From Diadema antillarum (Eukaryota), in the NCBI RefSeq assembly GCF_040938485.1, contig NW_027271066.1:124001-188000 (forward strand): a stretch of DNA of 64,000 bases, written 5' to 3'. Shown here in pieces: positions 3,766 through 20,030 of this stretch; positions within the stretch are counted from its first letter, which is position 1; every line of letters starts with the position of its first letter. Below the pieces are notes generated by a model. The model was not told the DNA's origin, made no database searches, and was given only the letters and a program-made list of their open reading frames with translations. A program made the translations under genes and the position numbers.

Positions 3766-4827
3766 ATGCAGAATTTCACTCCACCCGTCGATGAATCTAA
3801 TGAGAGTGAATTTGAGGTCGGTTTCGTCCACCGTGCCATTGGAGCAAGCATCCTCGTAGTCGTTGCCGTCATCGGCATCACCGGCAACAGCCTGGTGATC
3901 GTCGCGACGGCTGTCTCGCGAAAACTGCAGACGATAACGAACGTGTTTGTATTGAGTCTCAGCGTTACGGATCTCCTGACGTGCGCCCTGCTGCCCTTCC
4001 AGTCTTTAGGACTCGTCCACCCAGCAGGTTGGCCCTTGGACCACACCTTCTGTCAGGTGGTAGGAGCCTCTGTCTATATATCCACAATAACCAGCGTGCT
4101 CACTCTCGCTCTCATCGCCTTCAACCGCTATTATCTAATCACGAGAAGACCAGCTGACTACCAGTGGCTCTATAAACCCCTTCGATTGTGCCTCATGTTG
4201 GCCGTTGCCTGGTTCCAGTCAATACTCTGCTTGCTTGTACCAGAAGTTGTCAATATCGAGACGCTGGGCTACTTCAGCGAGCAGCGGTGGTGCAGCTGGT
4301 TGAGTAAGGAGGATCCGGTCGGCATATACGAATCAATCGCCTTTGTGAACATCTTCTTCTCGTTCCTTCTCATAATTTTCTGTTACGTCAAGATTTTGAT
4401 GCGGGTGCGTCAGCAGCGGCAAGTGTTGGCGCAAAGCGATGTCGCACCCGCTTCCGTCGTCACCGCCAACCGTCCGGAGCCCTCCGAGATGCCTGGTCAA
4501 GATCAAACTTCTGACGGTCCTCGCGGACTCGATGCCCCATCGAAGAAAGAGGTTCGGAAGAGAGACCGCCAGATCAACATGAACCTATTTTTCGTCGTGT
4601 GCGCTTTCTTCCTCTGCGTGATACCCCACAGTCTCTGCGTACTCATCCCGGGACACGAGATCCCCTCCATCTACACCTTCATCCTCATGTCCGTCAACTG
4701 CTGCATCAACCCTCTCATCTACGCCCAGAAGCATCCACATTTCAAGCAGGTGTTTCGTGCCCTTCTGAAATGTAAATACAACGACATTCCGCATCCATCC
4801 TCCTGGATAAGAGTCTCCCTGGAATGA
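3766..4827 (+). CDS. Intronless class A (rhodopsin-like) GPCR, 353 aa, NRY-type (moody/Tre1/GPR84/melatonin-receptor-like orphan group)
   Basis: Seven hydrophobic segments; TM1 GN (GITGNSLVI), TM2 LSVTDLL, Cys at TM3 start (FCQ) and in ECL2 (RWCS), TM3 AFNRY in place of DRY, TM6 CVIP, TM7 NPLIY, N-terminal sequons NFT and NES. Candidate 5'UTR acceptor TTTTTACAG just upstream of the ATG. Confidence 0.92.
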   Translation: MQNFTPPVDESNESEFEVGFVHRAIGASILVVVAVIGITGNSLVIVATAVSRKLQTITNVFVLSLSVTDLLTCALLPFQSLGLVHPAGWPLDHTFCQVVGASVYISTITSVLTLALIAFNRYYLITRRPADYQWLYKPLRLCLMLAVAWFQSILCLLVPEVVNIETLGYFSEQRWCSWLSKEDPVGIYESIAFVNIFFSFLLIIFCYVKILMRVRQQRQVLAQSDVAPASVVTANRPEPSEMPGQDQTSDGPRGLDAPSKKEVRKRDRQINMNLFFVVCAFFLCVIPHSLCVLIPGHEIPSIYTFILMSVNCCINPLIYAQKHPHFKQVFRALLKCKYNDIPHPSSWIRVSLE

Positions 4828-8161: not shown

Positions 8162-10899
8162 CTATGCAATAGTTCCCACCCTGAGATCATCTGTAAGAAC
8201 ATAATAGAAATACACTGTAGTAGTTTTTGGCAACACATATGTTCGTATTTCGAGAGAGAAAATAAAGGGGGAGCTGTAACGACGGCTTAAAGGGATGGTA
8301 TAGTATTGGTTTAAGTGAGAATTCAGCTTTTAACTTTTTGTAAAATAGTTAGAAATCATTCTATGAAATGTTAACAAACATACAATTCTAAGAGGAATTC
8401 AAAGTTTAGATGATGAAAATTGGCTTTGAAATGGCTGAGATATCCAAAACAAAAGTAAAACAACGCACTCCTAATAAAAGGTGGGTACCAACTTTTATTA
8501 GGATTGCGTTGTTTTGGATATCTCAGCCATTTCAAAACCAATTTTATTAAGCAAACTTTGAATTCCTTTTAGAATTATATGCTCTTTCATATTTCATAAG
8601 AAGTTTCTCATTATCTCAAAAAATCCTAATTAACAACACTGGAAACCTGAAGCCCCATTTCAAACGAAACTGTACCATCGCTTTAAACTTTGCACGACGA
8701 CGATGACATGAAAATAAATCAAAATGAGCATATCACATGATATTGTAATTATCGACGAGCAAATTCCCTTTTCACTGAATAAGAAGGTAACATGCATACG
8801 TTCTATCAAATAATAGCAGGAGTGCTTCGAGTCCCCTGCCTTGAAGCCACTTTGTAATCTTCAAACAATGTGTGGAATACAATGGCACATGCAATAAAGA
8901 TGATACGAGACTAAAGCATGTGTATTAGGATATTAAAAGACAGTGATGCCACATCTATGTGATTTGAAAGTAATTACAACGTGTCTCATGAAAATAGGGT
9001 CTTACTCACCACTGTCAGATGAACCACCGTTTGCATCACAGCCTGAGGAAGCAGCATCGTTCTGGGAACAGGTGCCAGTGCCGGCATCAGCCGAGGGGGC
9101 AAGAGGCACGTTTGGAGCCTGTGCGACTGGAGGTCGTGGTGCAGCAGGTGCTGCTGGGCGTGGCACCGGTGGTGCAGCAGGGCGTGGTGCAGCAGGACGT
9201 GGTGCAGCAGGGCGTGGTGCAGCTGGGCGCGGTGCAGCTGGGCGCGGTGCAGCAGGGGCTGGTGCAGCTGGTCGTGGTGCGGCAGGTACAGCTGGGCGTG
9301 GAGAGGGGGCCCGTGGTTGCACTGGAGAAAATGCGGGAGGAGCAGGTGGCGCAGGAGCTGGTGGGCCAGGGACCGGAATGCCTGCACCAGGAATGCTTGC
9401 AACCGTTGGGGAACCAGGAGCTGTTGCCGACGAATCTGACTCCCCACTAGAGTCAGCATCGGCTGCGTCAGCAGCAGGAGCAGCAGCTGCAGCAGCTCCA
9501 TCAACTCCATTAGCCCCATCTCCCGTATCAGCGGCATCTGTGTCAGCACCGTCGACGGTTTCAATGGTGTCGACCTCCTCTTCGCTGCTATCGCTGTCGG
9601 CATCACTGCCCGCTGTTCCAGCATCTGTAGCAGCGTCCGTCCCGTCAGCGTCAGCGGCGGCAAAGACAGTGCCGTCTCCTGGTGCAAATCCCACACCTGG
9701 CACGGGTGCTGCAGGGGCGTATGCTGGAACACCAGGAGATGCAGGAGCGTATCCTGGAACACCAGGAGATGCTGGGGCGTATGCTGGAACACCAGGAGAT
9801 GCAGGGGCGTATGCTGGAACACCAGGAGATGCAGGGGCGTATGCTGGAACACCAGGGGATGATGGAGCGTATCCTGGGACACCAGGGGGAGCAGGAGCTC
9901 TTGGTGGTTGAACAGGAGCACTTGGACGAGGAGGAGTAGGAGCCCTTTGGGGAGGATAGTAAGGCGCAGTCGGAGCTCTAGGGGGAGGAACAGGAGCCTG
10001 AGGTGCTCGAGGTGGGGCTACAGGGGGTCTTGGCGCTGAAGGAGCTGCAGGAGGTACTGGGACCGGAGCCCTAGGTGGTCCAGGTGCCACAGGAGCCCTC
10101 GGTGGCGCAGGTGCTGCAGGCGGGGCCGGTCCTGCAGGCGGGGCCGGTCCTGCAGGCGAGGCCGGTCCTGCTGGGGGTGCGGGAATAGGCGCGCTAGGGC
10201 CTCCGCCCCGACCACAAGCTCCTGAGTAAGAAACCGTGATCGTCGTTCCACTGGACTCAGAATCAGCCTCTATGTCACACTCATCGTTGTAGGTCTTGCC
10301 ATTGCTTCCACACACAGTACCAGAGCGACCTCTTTCGCACGAGTCCCGTGGCACTGTGGACACAAGAAGTTCAACAATTTGATGTAAAAATGTAGATGTA
10401 AATGTACATGCCTATGCTATCTTGTATGAGTGCTTGTTAATATGTTTCACCACTGCTTTCAGTATATGTAAATCAATTTCATCGATTGAATTCGGCGCAT
10501 GCTTCTGCGTGAGTACGTACCGATCTTCGGTATATCTGCGACTTGCACTTCATGAGCAGTTAAGTTATGACATTCTTTTTTTTTAAAGACCTCTTGAGTG
10601 TTGCAGCTGATGTACTCTACAAAAGATGCATTTGATTAGATTGAGAGTGTTCTATCATAGTTTCAACATTTTCATGCTTGAAAACTAGGATTGTGATTTT
10701 ATTTATCACACTATCTTGTAAGAAGGTGCACCTTTGAAAAATGACATATTCTCTCATAATGGATTATATTAGACTGTTGGAAATTAGCTGATTCAGAAGA
10801 AGTCAGCAGCTTGGTAAATTCACCTCTTGGGGCAGCTAGTGACAGCGTCGCTAAAGACAAGAGACAGCCGAGCACAGCTAGACTTGAAATCACTCGCAT
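8162..10899 (-). CDS. Gene A: secreted Pro/Ala/Arg-rich and acidic Asp/Gly/Ser-rich protein with an N-terminal degenerate (4-Cys) Kazal domain, 482 aa; candidate skeletal/tooth matrix protein
   Basis: Coding exons 10899-10824 (MRVISSLAVLGCLLSLATLSLAAPR+G), 10353-9010 and 8190-8162 (DDLRVGTIA*). All GT-AG, all phase 1, total 1449 nt in frame. Non-coding exon about 11550-11440; 3'UTR intron 8119-7784. Confidence 0.85.
8287..8686. mobile_element. Palindromic MITE with TTAA-AG termini (Kolobok-like), inside the last coding intron of gene A
   Basis: Ends TTAAAGGGATGGTATAGT and ACTGTACCATCGCTTTAA; long internal inverted repeat (TGAAATGGCTGAGATATCCAAAAC...GTTTTGGATATCTCAGCCATTTCA) centred on GGTACC near 8487. 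Confidence 0.8.
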
Positions 10900-17593: not shown

Positions 17594-20030
17594 TTAGCAG
17601 GCGCCATCCCTAGCTTTAGCGAGCTGGCGATCCCCCCTGATGCAAGCGGAGTATCGCAGGTCGCACAGGCTTTTGTAGGTGTGCCCATCCGTCCCACAAA
17701 CCTGCATGGTCTGGGCAACATAGTTGGTGGGGCAGGGGTCACAGGTCTTCTTCAGGTCATCTGGGCACCAGTGGTAATGAGGAAAAGAGGTTTTTCTCTT
17801 TTAAATTTGGTAATCCCATTGACGTAGCAATCACTGTCTTTTGACAGAGTATCCAATTCAATAATCCAAAGAGAGCAGCTATGGACAAGGTGATGTACCT
17901 AGTCAGCGACGGGTCTTTTTTTTTCTTTTGCTTTGCATAAGTTTCTCTGGGAAGGAGGATATGGTTTAACTGGCTCTATTCAAAGCAATTAACCTGTTTA
18001 GCAGTAAACCCATCGAAGATTATTCTGTTATAAATTTGATCCTATTGTTTCGAAAAATTTTGTTTTTGTCATCGTCGAACTATTTGATTAGCCTAATTTG
18101 GAACTCTCTTAGACAGGGCCATCTGAATTAGTTATTGTTTGCTTTTGCACAATTTATATATAAAAACCTGTAACAATGATAAGTTTTATTGCCTAATTAA
18201 GGCTGTCGTGCATTAGGACATAGTCTACCTCAGTGAAGGAAAGTTTCAGGATTGGTATTTACTCTTGAAATGTCAAGATCTTGAAAGGGTAGACAAACAC
18301 GTCTGAGCTTACCGTAATTAGACGTTGTGGTGCAACCGTTGCTACTGCCACCCGGTTCTCCGTTGTCGCATCCATTATCTCCGTTATCTCCGTTATCTCC
18401 GTTATCGCCTTCGCTTGGAGCCTCAGGTTCTGGTTTAGGCTCTGGAGCAGGGGCTGGAGCAGGAGCAGGAGCAGGGGCCGGAGCTGGTGCAGGGGCCGGT
18501 GCAGGAGCCGGAGCCGGAGCAGGGGCAGGAGCAGGAGCTGGAGCTGGAGCCGGTGCTGGAGCTGGGGCAGGAGCGGCTGGTCGTGGTACAGGTACAAGCT
18601 GGGGTTGACGCGGTACAGGTGCGCGAGGAGCTGGTGCCGGCGCTCTCGGAACAGGCGCCCTGGGAACAGGCGCCCTGGGAACAGGTGCCCTCGGAACGGG
18701 AGCCCGTGGAGCAGGTGCTCTCGGTACAGGGGCACTTGGAACAGGTGCTCTCGGCACAGGAGCTCTTGGAGCGGGAGCTCGTGGCTGGGGCGCGCTGACT
18801 GCGGGGAATCCAGCAGGAGCTGCTGCCGGGAAAAAGGGGGCAGGGGCAGCGGCAGGAAATCCCGGGGCAGCGGCAGGAAATCCCGGGGCTGCAGCAGCAG
18901 CCACTCCACCACCAGCGGCTTCAGCCTCAGCTGCAGACACACCTCCTTCTCCGCCATCGCCCCCTTCTCCACCATCACCCCCTTCGGATGCACCTTCTTC
19001 AGCCGACGCAGCTGCAGCAAATGCTGCCCCTACACACTCCTCGCTGCTGTCACTGTCACAGCCAGCTGAAAAGAGAAAAAAATCACTATATGATCGTAGT
19101 GTGTTTTCCATTGCATCCAGATGAATGTTTCAGTAGACAAAGTTTCCAACAGCTAGGGACTACATGAACTTTATAATGAGTTTTTTTTTTTACTTTTGTT
19201 TTTAGTGGTATCAAGATTCCGCATGATGACTTGACTAGAAGTCTAATTTATTCTAGCGAAATTTAGGAGTCTTGAAAGTGTTTTTCCAAAATGCTTTGAG
19301 TAAGTACCAGACAAAAGGTATTTTTCTTCTTTTTCAAATTAAGTTATTAGTCTGAATTGGGATGTAATTACCCGCTGCTACTTCAAAACCGACAGCTCCA
19401 TCCGCCGCATCGAATGCCGCGAAAAAGCCACCTTGCGGAGCGGGAGCAAAAGCGGGAAATGTAGCACTTGGGGCTCTTGCAGGGAAGCCAACCGCAGGTG
19501 CGCTTGCCGGAAAGCCGACTGCTGGAGCCCGTGGGACTGGGGCATAAGCTGGGGCACTTGGTGCCGGTGCTCTGGGAGCAGGGGCTCTTGGAGCAGGGGC
19601 CCGTGGAGCAGGAGCCCGCGGAACAGGGGCAAATGGTGTTGGAGCCCTTGGGGCAGGAATTGGGGCTCGTGGTGCAGGTGGCTGAGGGGCTCTTGGTGCT
19701 GGGGCCGCCGCAGGAGCGCATCCTCCTGGACCACACCCGCCGCCGTAGGATCCTCCGCTGGTATCACACGAATATCCAGGATCACCGTTGCTGCAGCCAT
19801 TGTCATCTCGTCGTTCTGGTGACAGCAAAGTGATAATCATGAGGTTGAAATCATTAATAAAGTTGGTAGTTGTTTGCGCATCTGTAGTGATTTAACATGA
19901 AAGGAAAAGTGGCCATTGATTGTTAGAACTCTTGAAAACAAGACGATATCTTACCTCTGGGAGCTGATATCACTACGCCCAAGGTGCACATGAGGGCAAA
20001 AAGTGTTGCAAGAATCCTTGTTGACTCCAT
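17594..20030 (-). CDS. Gene B: secreted Pro/Ala/Arg-rich protein with acidic Gly/Asp/Glu spacers and a C-terminal Kazal domain, 479 aa; candidate skeletal/tooth matrix protein
   Basis: Coding exons 20030-19955 (MESTRILATLFALMCTLGVVISAPR+G), 19815-19372, 19065-18313 and 17760-17594 (DDLKKTCDPCPTNYVAQTMQVCGTDGHTYKSLCDLRYSACIRGDRQLAKARDGAC*). All phase 1, 1440 nt in frame. 3'UTR intron 17583-17025. Confidence 0.87.

Follow-up and report, generated by a model that had tools for sequence, protein, structure and literature searches.

Gene A of Diadema antillarum, on the minus strand of the 64,000-nt stretch of DNA analyzed here (the window), probably encodes a member of the sea-urchin tooth or skeletal matrix family, whose N-terminal Kazal-like domain (domain A) would have inherited a single, ancient loss of the I–V disulfide bond. 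This reading of the sequence assigns the Diadema locus to a family first recognized in proteomic work on Strongylocentrotus purpuratus, with one small addition: the N-terminal Kazal-like domains of the family lack the I–V bond, possess an acidic helix instead, and keep an arginine at position P1 (with one Gly among the S. purpuratus domains printed in the supplement of the proteomic study).

The full coding sequence of gene A comprises 1449 nt (482 residues). Its features are given below in the direction of transcription, together with exon K4 of gene E, which serves as comparator.

10824..10899, minus strand: coding exon 1, a signal peptide of ∼22 residues followed by APR, ending in phase 1 (sequence and signal-peptide scan)
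10823-10822, minus strand: GT donor of exon 1
10354..10823, minus strand: intron 1, 470 nt (donor and acceptor read)
10214..10353, minus strand: four-cysteine Kazal-like domain, domain A (translation, Pfam, alignment, structure model)
10349-10351, minus strand: Pro27, in the place of Cys I (alignment with K4)
10337-10339, minus strand: Cys II
10331-10333, minus strand: Arg33, at the P1 position
10310-10312, minus strand: Cys III
10277-10279, minus strand: Cys IV
10259-10261, minus strand: Ser57 (TCT), in the place of Cys V (alignment with K4)
10214-10216, minus strand: Cys VI
9677..10213, minus strand: Ala/Pro-rich basic block 1, residues 73-251 (composition)
9434..9676, minus strand: acidic block, residues 252-332 (composition)
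9089..9433, minus strand: Ala/Pro-rich basic block 2, residues 333-447, with PAAPRP repeats (composition)
9010..9088, minus strand: 3′ end of exon 2, coding for an acidic tail that contains the GTGTC...GC cysteine pair
9009-9008, minus strand: GT donor of exon 2
8162..8190, minus strand: coding exon 3, ...DDLRVGTIA and stop
51452..51589, minus strand: K4 of gene E, a canonical six-cysteine Kazal exon outside gene A

The join between exon 1, which is also present in haplotig L002, and the exon starting at 10353 is in phase 1, and the signal peptide directly precedes the Kazal-like domain. The acceptor consists of cag followed by exonic TG at 10353, which gives a phase-1 opening with a split Val codon. 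The initial annotation named a micro-exon supplying Cys I as a finding that would overturn its reading. There is none in the predicted join, which reads ...LAAPRVPRDSC and matches ...LAAPRSPRDSC of S. purpuratus, and the paralogues in Diadema show the same two-exon start. In the initial annotation, the RVPR of this join is a putative furin motif that reuses the Cys I position.

Domain A contains exactly four cysteines with the spacing C-x8-C-x10-C-x20-C, and the translation of 10214-10351 (minus strand) bears out the earlier count. Only Cys II, III, IV, and VI of the usual six-cysteine pattern (disulfides I–V, II–IV, and III–VI) are present; position I is occupied by Pro and position V by Ser or Ala. 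The two missing residues are indeed disulfide partners, as had been proposed, according to the 1–5/2–4/3–6 pattern of Kazal domains (PMC1236909). Domain A is a true Kazal-type domain. Both Pfam profiles suggested for a check matched it above their cut-offs, with 34.9 bits for PF07648 Kazal_2 (cut-off 22.8) and 32.5 bits for PF00050 Kazal_1 (cut-off 21), and a profile of the four-cysteine family matched chains of agrin, follistatin, ovomucoid, and GmSPI-2. The AlphaFold model, which has a five-row alignment behind it and is of moderate confidence (pLDDT 70.9), assumes a Kazal-like strand-strand-helix-strand order with a strand at residues 13-15 and a helix at residues 24-34. All 50 PDB matches listed by Foldseek for this model are Kazal or follistatin-type domains (TM ∼0.5–0.7, rmsd ∼2 Å, weak E-values). 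The fold would be held by the two disulfides II–IV and III–VI, expected as C31–C51 and C40–C72. All eight Kazal domains that had been counted in the window are present, on the minus strand.

Four-cysteine domains are found at three other Diadema loci with the same exon layout as gene A. Each of the four loci has an allelic copy, and a phase-1 signal-peptide exon lies directly upstream in 3/3 of the loci checked. A first MAFFT alignment put the first cysteine of domain A into the Cys I column. It was rejected, because the partner Cys V is absent and Cys IV would be left unpaired, and tree building was restricted to the region from Cys II to Cys VI (43 columns). In this tree of 53 Diadema Kazal domains, the four four-cysteine domains form one clade (support 99/96), with K4 placed elsewhere. 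Five aligned Diadema sequences all have Arg at P1 within an equally invariant C-x-R-G...V-C-G frame, and each member of the family has a strongly acidic helix after Cys IV that contains runs of Asp or Glu. The GPCR frame that adjoins gene A falls exactly into a protein cluster with Diadema antillarum and D. setosum sequences. As a sign of segmental duplication, a GPCR paralogue was sought next to the paralogue on C504, and none was found there.

The closest known relatives are proteins of the S. purpuratus tooth matrix, identified by proteomics as Ala/Pro-rich and acidic, with a group comprising Glean3:17587–17590 and 22278 (Mann et al. 2008). They are described as alternating neutral or basic Ala/Pro-rich blocks, devoid of acidic residues, with acidic Gly-rich blocks at an overall pI of 4–5; the domain is termed "predicted Kazal" there, with no remark on the cysteine count in that section or in the supplement. 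Gene A has the same composition: basic block 1 (39% Pro, 24% Ala, no Asp or Glu) has a pI of 11.0, the acidic block (23% Asp, 6% Glu, 12% Gly) of 4.1, basic block 2 (37% Pro, 30% Ala, 9% Arg) of 12.0, and the whole mature protein (joined sequence; 25% Pro, 24% Ala) of 4.4. Both also possess a signal peptide, a ∼45-residue Kazal-like domain with four cysteines, a GTGTC...C ending, and a tandem gene cluster. The domains printed in the supplement, compared by eye, have four cysteines, and two start with PRDSC (VPRDSC and SPRDSC). They share APR-x-PRDSC, CGSNGK, PAAPRP repeats, and the GTGTC ending with gene A. Position P1 is Arg in three of the four printed domains and Gly in one, and the helix after Cys IV contains Asp/Glu runs here, too. 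There are also differences. Diadema belongs to a different urchin order, repeat numbers and block lengths deviate, and gene A is a single unit, whereas the 2008 model 17588 consists of several units strung together. We therefore regard the product of gene A as a putative secreted matrix protein of the Diadema tooth or skeleton, which would be organized as signal peptide, four-cysteine domain, basic block, acidic block, basic block, and cysteine-pair tail.

Because the same four-cysteine domains occur in other Diadema loci and in S. purpuratus, the loss of the I–V bond predates gene A and, contrary to the earlier assumption, did not take place within it. The bond was probably lost once, in the ancestor of the subfamily before the split of Diadema and Strongylocentrotus, and gene A would have inherited this state rather than acquired it after a copy of K4.

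The initial annotation held that the K4 exon was copied into gene A by exon shuffling and that Cys I and Cys V were then lost there. Domain A and K4 share 18 of 45 aligned residues, including NGKTY and the T-ITV-x-Y-x-G-x-C tail; gene A and K4 lie on the same strand, ∼41 kb apart, and K4 is among the canonical domains that score best against domain A. In both exons, five residues, one of them a shared Asp, precede Cys II after the phase-1 start, and this previously noted spacing is common to domain A and K4 only. The phase-1 opening is common to every Kazal exon examined, and the exact TTITV motif is carried by a domain on C601. More generally, gene E (K1–K5) and the agrin- and follistatin-like arrays on C601 and C1436 all share C-G-x-[DN]-G-x-T-Y-x-x-x-C and phase-1 exons with domain A at 43–46% identity, whereas these canonical domains have six cysteines, lack the acidic helix and a fused low-complexity region, and fall outside the four-cysteine clade. 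The score of domain A against K4 (28–32 bits) equals that against the unlinked C1436 and C601 domains (29–31 bits) and is exceeded by that against the C504 paralogue (39.6 bits), and domain A is not among the ten best partners of K4. A tree had been suggested as a check, and the one built here does not group domain A with K4, an outcome that the initial annotation had named as refuting its reading. Domain A falls within the clade of four-cysteine domains on other contigs, and forcing it together with K4 costs 21.5 log-likelihood units, although with 43 columns the AU test still permits this arrangement (p 0.114). Recent gene conversion between K4 and domain A was considered and rejected, since a third-codon-position identity of 0.40 and the same codon at 11 of 18 identical residues give no signal of it, and the former value likewise does not indicate recent copying. 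Together with the four-cysteine PRDSC-type domains already present in the printed S. purpuratus sequences, these results make a transfer of K4 into gene A highly improbable. The gene A locus reveals neither a recent exon-shuffling event nor a new mechanism.

A copy at a much earlier stage fares somewhat better, but is still unlikely: the founder of the subfamily could have arisen before the euechinoid split as a copy of a K4-like exon in an adjacent multi-Kazal gene, with the likeness of domain A and K4 as a remnant that gene A retained best. The AU test permits a clade of the four-cysteine family with K4 (8.3 log-likelihood units, p 0.32), gene E adjoins the matrix-gene cluster, and the distance from exon start to Cys II would be a trace of common origin. 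However, the free tree resolves no sister of the four-cysteine clade, and unlinked domains resemble domain A equally well. We also considered that gene A is a decaying or mis-modeled locus and that its four-cysteine state is damage. None of the listed sequencing runs is on record as RNA, and word searches with residues 1–60 of exon 2 and with the whole exon returned no scoring match and no annotated protein; the empty searches are likely due to low-complexity filtering and length limits and do not speak for an absence of relatives. Against decay, the open frame is intact in both haplotypes (469 or 484 residues), the splice sites are canonical, and the exon join matches an S. purpuratus protein identified by MS/MS. 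In contigs from a second organism, only four differences are listed within the 140-nt domain, two of them synonymous and none in a Cys codon; one such contig shows 52 differences in total across an 801-nt stretch, and differences are far denser in intron 1 than in the domain. This sparseness and the invariant Arg at P1 count in favor of constraint on domain A, and a damaged locus is highly improbable.

There are established examples of active Kazal domains with only two disulfides. GmSPI-2 from Galleria mellonella (PDB codes 4hgu and 2m5x) has only the equivalents of II–IV and III–VI, yet assumes a Kazal fold in its solved structures and is strongly active (PMC4169406). Like domain A, it lacks the I–V bond and has P1 two residues after the first cysteine; its cysteines are at positions 5, 13, 24, and 39, compared with C-x8-C-x10-C-x20-C in domain A. 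GmSPI-2 stands alone as an inhibitor of 36–40 residues; its loop comprises 7 residues with Thr at P1, and it acts on subtilisin and proteinase K. In gene A, by contrast, the domain is followed by ∼410 residues of disordered matrix sequence in the same protein, and its loop comprises 8 residues with Arg at P1. The family profile matches GmSPI-2 weakly (E 0.0085), which does not indicate common descent. Searching with the four-cysteine alignment gave 1638 profile matches, and among the best 150 (unrelated multi-Kazal proteins, ranked by summed score), Cys I and Cys V are both missing from 26 domains. Losses of this pair thus recur; the resemblance between domain A and GmSPI-2 is convergent, and the two losses are independent. 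A further precedent is EPI1a of Phytophthora, a Kazal domain without Cys III and Cys VI that still inhibits (PMC1236909). It has also lost one disulfide, but the missing bond is III–VI instead of I–V.

The C-x-R-G of domain A, with Arg at P1, appears to preserve a reactive-site loop of the canonical type. There is about an even chance that, within the mineralizing space, domain A inhibits serine proteases of the trypsin-like or convertase type, which could protect the Arg-rich disordered blocks downstream of the domain. The strongly acidic helix at the former Cys V site would face calcium or mineral. The loop from Cys II to Cys III, one residue longer than usual (8 instead of 7), Gly at P1′, Glu at P2, and the P1 Gly in one printed S. 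purpuratus domain count against assured inhibition. The other possibility, to which we give somewhat less than an even chance, is that domain A is no longer an inhibitor and acts as a small acidic module stapled by disulfides, with calcium, mineral, or a matrix partner as its ligand. It would fit with the pI of 4.3 of domain A, with the longer loop, and with the helix after Cys IV, which is strongly acidic in all members from Diadema and in the printed S. purpuratus domains. The family profile also matches many Kazal modules of the follistatin and agrin type, which are not known to inhibit proteases. The invariant Arg at P1 argues mildly against a non-inhibitory domain; the same holds for the C-x-R-G...V-C-G frame, conserved in Diadema and in three of the four printed S. 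purpuratus domains, and GmSPI-2 demonstrates that a Kazal domain without the I–V bond can be a potent inhibitor. For biomineralization, the question is whether these domains are protease inhibitors, mineral binders, or both. In a combined scenario, which is rather improbable as a whole, a single copy of a K4-like exon from the neighboring multi-Kazal gene founded an echinoid-specific subfamily of this module, which has been kept for >200 million years at the N-terminus of tooth-matrix proteins as a P1-Arg inhibitor with a calcium- or mineral-binding helix. If so, domain A would form an N-terminal cap that keeps trypsin-like proteases away from the Arg-rich disordered matrix, and the loss of Cys V would have freed the acidic helix to bind calcium or mineral.

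The replacement of Cys I by Pro in the alignment with K4 was as first described, and that of Cys V by Ser is correct for this haplotype but is not a fixed state. The second haplotype has GCT (Ala) at this position instead of TCT (Ser), and Ala is also found in contigs of 4/4 other sequencing runs (10261 A>C). The Ser is thus a minority allele, and the single step between TGT and TCT pointed out earlier is coincidental: all other copies seen have GCT.

Translation of 10214–10351 on the minus strand yields the Kazal-like peptide quoted in the initial annotation, with exactly four cysteines (domain A). The missing Cys I and Cys V had been described as disulfide partners, and this pairing logic is right. 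Domain A exceeds the Pfam cut-offs for both Kazal_2 (34.9 against 22.8 bits) and Kazal_1 (32.5 against 21 bits). Its exon starts at 10353 after a cag acceptor, where TG completes a split Val codon, and from domain A the open frame runs unbroken through ∼400 low-complexity residues, Pro/Ala-rich and acidic. This long frame is intact in both haplotypes. The joined coding sequence of gene A comprises 1449 nt (482 residues); composition and pI were derived from exons joined by a script, and searches were done on the separate exons.

Organization of gene A
10824–10899, minus strand: exon 1, hydrophobic signal peptide ending in ...SLAAPR plus one base; GT donor at 10823–10822
9010–10353, minus strand: exon 2, Kazal-like domain followed by low-complexity blocks
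8162–8190, minus strand: exon 3, nine further residues (first codon split with exon 2) and stop
Residues ∼1–22: signal peptide
Residues 26–72: Kazal-like domain, pI 4.3
Residues 73–251: Ala/Pro-rich block 1, 39% Pro, 24% Ala, no acidic residues, pI 11.0
Residues 252–332: acidic block, 23% Asp, 12% Gly, pI 4.1
Residues 333–447: Ala/Pro-rich block 2, 37% Pro, 30% Ala, 9% Arg, pI 12.0
Residues 448–482: acidic tail including a cysteine pair, pI 4.1

Gene A is very probably a further member of an already known tooth-matrix family. The section and supplement on these proteins in Mann, Poustka and Mann 2008 (PMC2614417) describe a group of five proteins from the Strongylocentrotus purpuratus tooth matrix (Glean3:17587–17590 and 22278) that have signal peptides, blocks switching between a basic Ala/Pro-rich and an acidic Gly-rich type, and an overall pI of 4–5; four of the five carry one or two "predicted Kazal" domains each. 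In composition and pI, gene A matches this description block for block. As printed in Additional file 7 (PMC2614417), the 17590/22278 domain has just four cysteines, the pattern C-T-R-G-V-S-G-x-V-C-G-D-N-G, and a run of Asp, and model 17588 contains two more four-cysteine domains, the first preceded by a signal peptide (...LAAPRSPRDSC) and the second starting with VPRDSC and having the core CGSNGKSYNNEC. The 17588 unit that opens with the VPRDSC domain possesses PAAPRP repeats, a PGVGFAPG motif, and a GTGTC...C ending, all three of which are also present in gene A. The Diadema sequences were compared with the printed S. purpuratus sequences by eye. In the 2010 phosphoproteome paper, 17588 and 17590/22278 are among the test and tooth matrix proteins listed as phosphorylated. 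The C-G-(x)-D-S-S-E-E-C motif, initially annotated in window genes B–D, is also printed for Glean3:17587 and 17588 (PMC2614417 supplement).

We searched the whole Diadema genome with domain A. Both haplotypes are in the assembly, contig C843 being the haplotig of C178, the contig of the window.

Matches of domain A in the Diadema genome
C504 (allele C1072): 50% identity, 39.6 bits, best non-self match
Gene E exon K4, C843 haplotype: 45% identity, 31.8 bits
C1436 domain, unlinked: 43% identity, 31.0 bits
C601 domain, unlinked: 46% identity, 29.0 bits
Gene E exon K4, window copy: 43% identity, 28.0 bits

The C504 exon encodes a Kazal domain with four cysteines and then APYAPAAP repeats. In two C503 exons, which have alleles on C614, a four-cysteine domain leads into acidic Gly/Asp sequence that contains cysteine pairs. 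A genome-wide profile search with these domains found exactly four four-cysteine loci, all of them also present as an allelic copy. In all three loci examined (gene A, C504, and one C503 locus), a signal-peptide exon with a phase-1 donor lies directly upstream of the Kazal exon. The exon join of C504 (...GAPYSQC) resembles that of printed S. purpuratus 17590 (...GAPYSNKC), which supports the splice as well as the orthology. A micro-exon supplying Cys I is neither needed nor likely. The four-cysteine state is a trait of the family. Loss of the I–V bond probably predates the divergence of the Diadematoida from the Strongylocentrotus lineage, which dates back more than 200 million years. That this state extends across the whole family is a small addition, unremarked in the section and supplement of the 2008 paper on these proteins (PMC2614417). 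The C503 paralogues L011/L012 (G000:C503:1014840-1014962 and its C614 allele) and L030 (C503:1006074-1006196) are arranged head-to-head ∼9 kb apart and have a shortened four-cysteine domain; the extreme Gly/Asp sequence after it contains W-D repeats (WDWDWDWGWDYDWDW) and numerous cysteine pairs at close spacing.

The initial annotation counted eight Kazal domains in the window, and the seven besides domain A were all found on the minus strand. Gene E carries K1 to K5, and a Kazal domain closes both gene B and gene C.

17597–17746, minus strand: gene B, canonical six-cysteine Kazal domain in the last coding exon, stop right after Cys VI
24672–24815, minus strand: gene C, likewise

Whereas genes of the gene A type open with a four-cysteine domain, genes B and C close with a six-cysteine one, indicating two distinct Kazal positions in a single matrix-gene cluster.

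The gene A exon had been proposed to derive from K4 (51452–51589). A tree was built from the Cys II to Cys VI region of 53 non-redundant Diadema Kazal domains, retaining 43 columns and omitting allelic copies, partial transporter-type domains, and three fetches in the wrong frame. In this tree, all four four-cysteine domains group in a single clade on a long stem (ultrafast bootstrap 99, SH-aLRT 96). K4 is placed in a different, poorly resolved region, and the proposed derivation was thus not borne out. A clade of domain A with K4 was 21.5 log-likelihood units worse (AU test, p = 0.114) and a clade of the whole four-cysteine family with K4 8.3 units worse (p = 0.32), neither being formally rejected with so few columns (43). 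By pairwise score against domain A, K4 is level with the C1436 and C601 domains; domain A is absent from the ten best partners of K4, and one C601 domain likewise contains TTITV in exact form. The phase-1 start shared by domain A and K4 is real but provides no link to K4, as it is general (A, K3, K4, K5, C, and the C504/C503 paralogues). The equal distance from exon start to Cys II (five residues) is found only in these two and is a weak point for the K4 proposal. The Ser codon TCT, taken as one step from TGT, belongs to a minority allele: GCT stands in the second haplotype, and position 10261 is C, giving GCT (Ala), in contigs of all four other runs, under both organism codes. Its closeness to TGT is therefore no trace of history. 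With 18 of 45 residues identical and a third-position identity of 0.40, domain A and K4 show no sign of recent copying or conversion. A K4 origin as an event within gene A is not supported, and a K4-like origin of the whole four-cysteine subfamily is at most possible.

The family profile matches solved Kazal structures, namely agrin (8s9p), follistatin, ovomucoid, and GmSPI-2 (E = 0.0085). An AlphaFold model from a five-row alignment (mean pLDDT 70.9) comprises a strand (13–15) and a helix (24–34). All 50 PDB matches listed by Foldseek are Kazal or follistatin-type domains (TM ∼0.5–0.7, rmsd ∼2 Å), with weak E-values for this small domain. GmSPI-2 is a solved, highly active Kazal inhibitor with two disulfides only, Cys5–Cys24 and Cys13–Cys39, equivalent to II–IV and III–VI, and its P1 lies two residues past the first cysteine (PMC4169406). 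As GmSPI-2 is folded and active without the I–V bond, loss of this bond need not destroy fold or function. Loss of Cys I and Cys V recurs; 26 domains lacking both were found among the 150 multi-Kazal proteins listed in an exhaustive search. A Kazal-type domain at G000:C54:1064825-1065010 (L053) lacks Cys V and seemingly keeps Cys I, which would leave an unpaired cysteine.

The P1 position of domain A is Arg-33, and C-x-R-G and V-C-G are invariant in five Diadema sequences; Arg is also at P1 in three of the four S. purpuratus domains printed in the supplement (PMC2614417). Domain A may retain an inhibitory loop directed at trypsin-like or convertase-type proteases, and such a loop ahead of Arg-rich disordered blocks would make sense. 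Because this loop exceeds the usual length by one residue and has Gly at P1′, the chances that domain A is a protease inhibitor are about evenly balanced. The helix after Cys IV is acidic in every family member and might face calcium or mineral.

Across the 140 nt of domain A, four differences are listed in contigs with the second organism code: two synonymous, Ser57Ala, and Tyr68His, the last giving the His found at the same position in the printed VPRDSC-type S. purpuratus domain. None of the listed differences hits a Cys codon. One such contig covers the entire 801-nt stretch with 52 differences, those listed being mainly intronic, in keeping with constraint on domain A.

An additional gene lies ∼3.3 kb past the end of gene A.

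3766–4827, plus strand: intronless rhodopsin-type GPCR, "moody-like" in the NCBI Diadema annotation

The GPCR frame (3766–4824) exactly matches a member of a protein cluster that includes Diadema antillarum and D. setosum proteins, which places the window in a Diadema sea urchin. The S. purpuratus 17590/22278 entry is annotated as "similar to serotonin receptor 2B" (2010 phosphoproteome paper), which may reflect a similar GPCR neighbor that had been merged into the earlier model of the gene. No GPCR beside the C504 paralogue was among the matches listed on C504. The window contains 360 N, part of them in a run near 43.6 kb. Past its upper end, more canonical Kazal exons are found at G000:C178:193355-193489 and 225022-235641, which may represent an upstream extension of gene E or another multi-Kazal gene.
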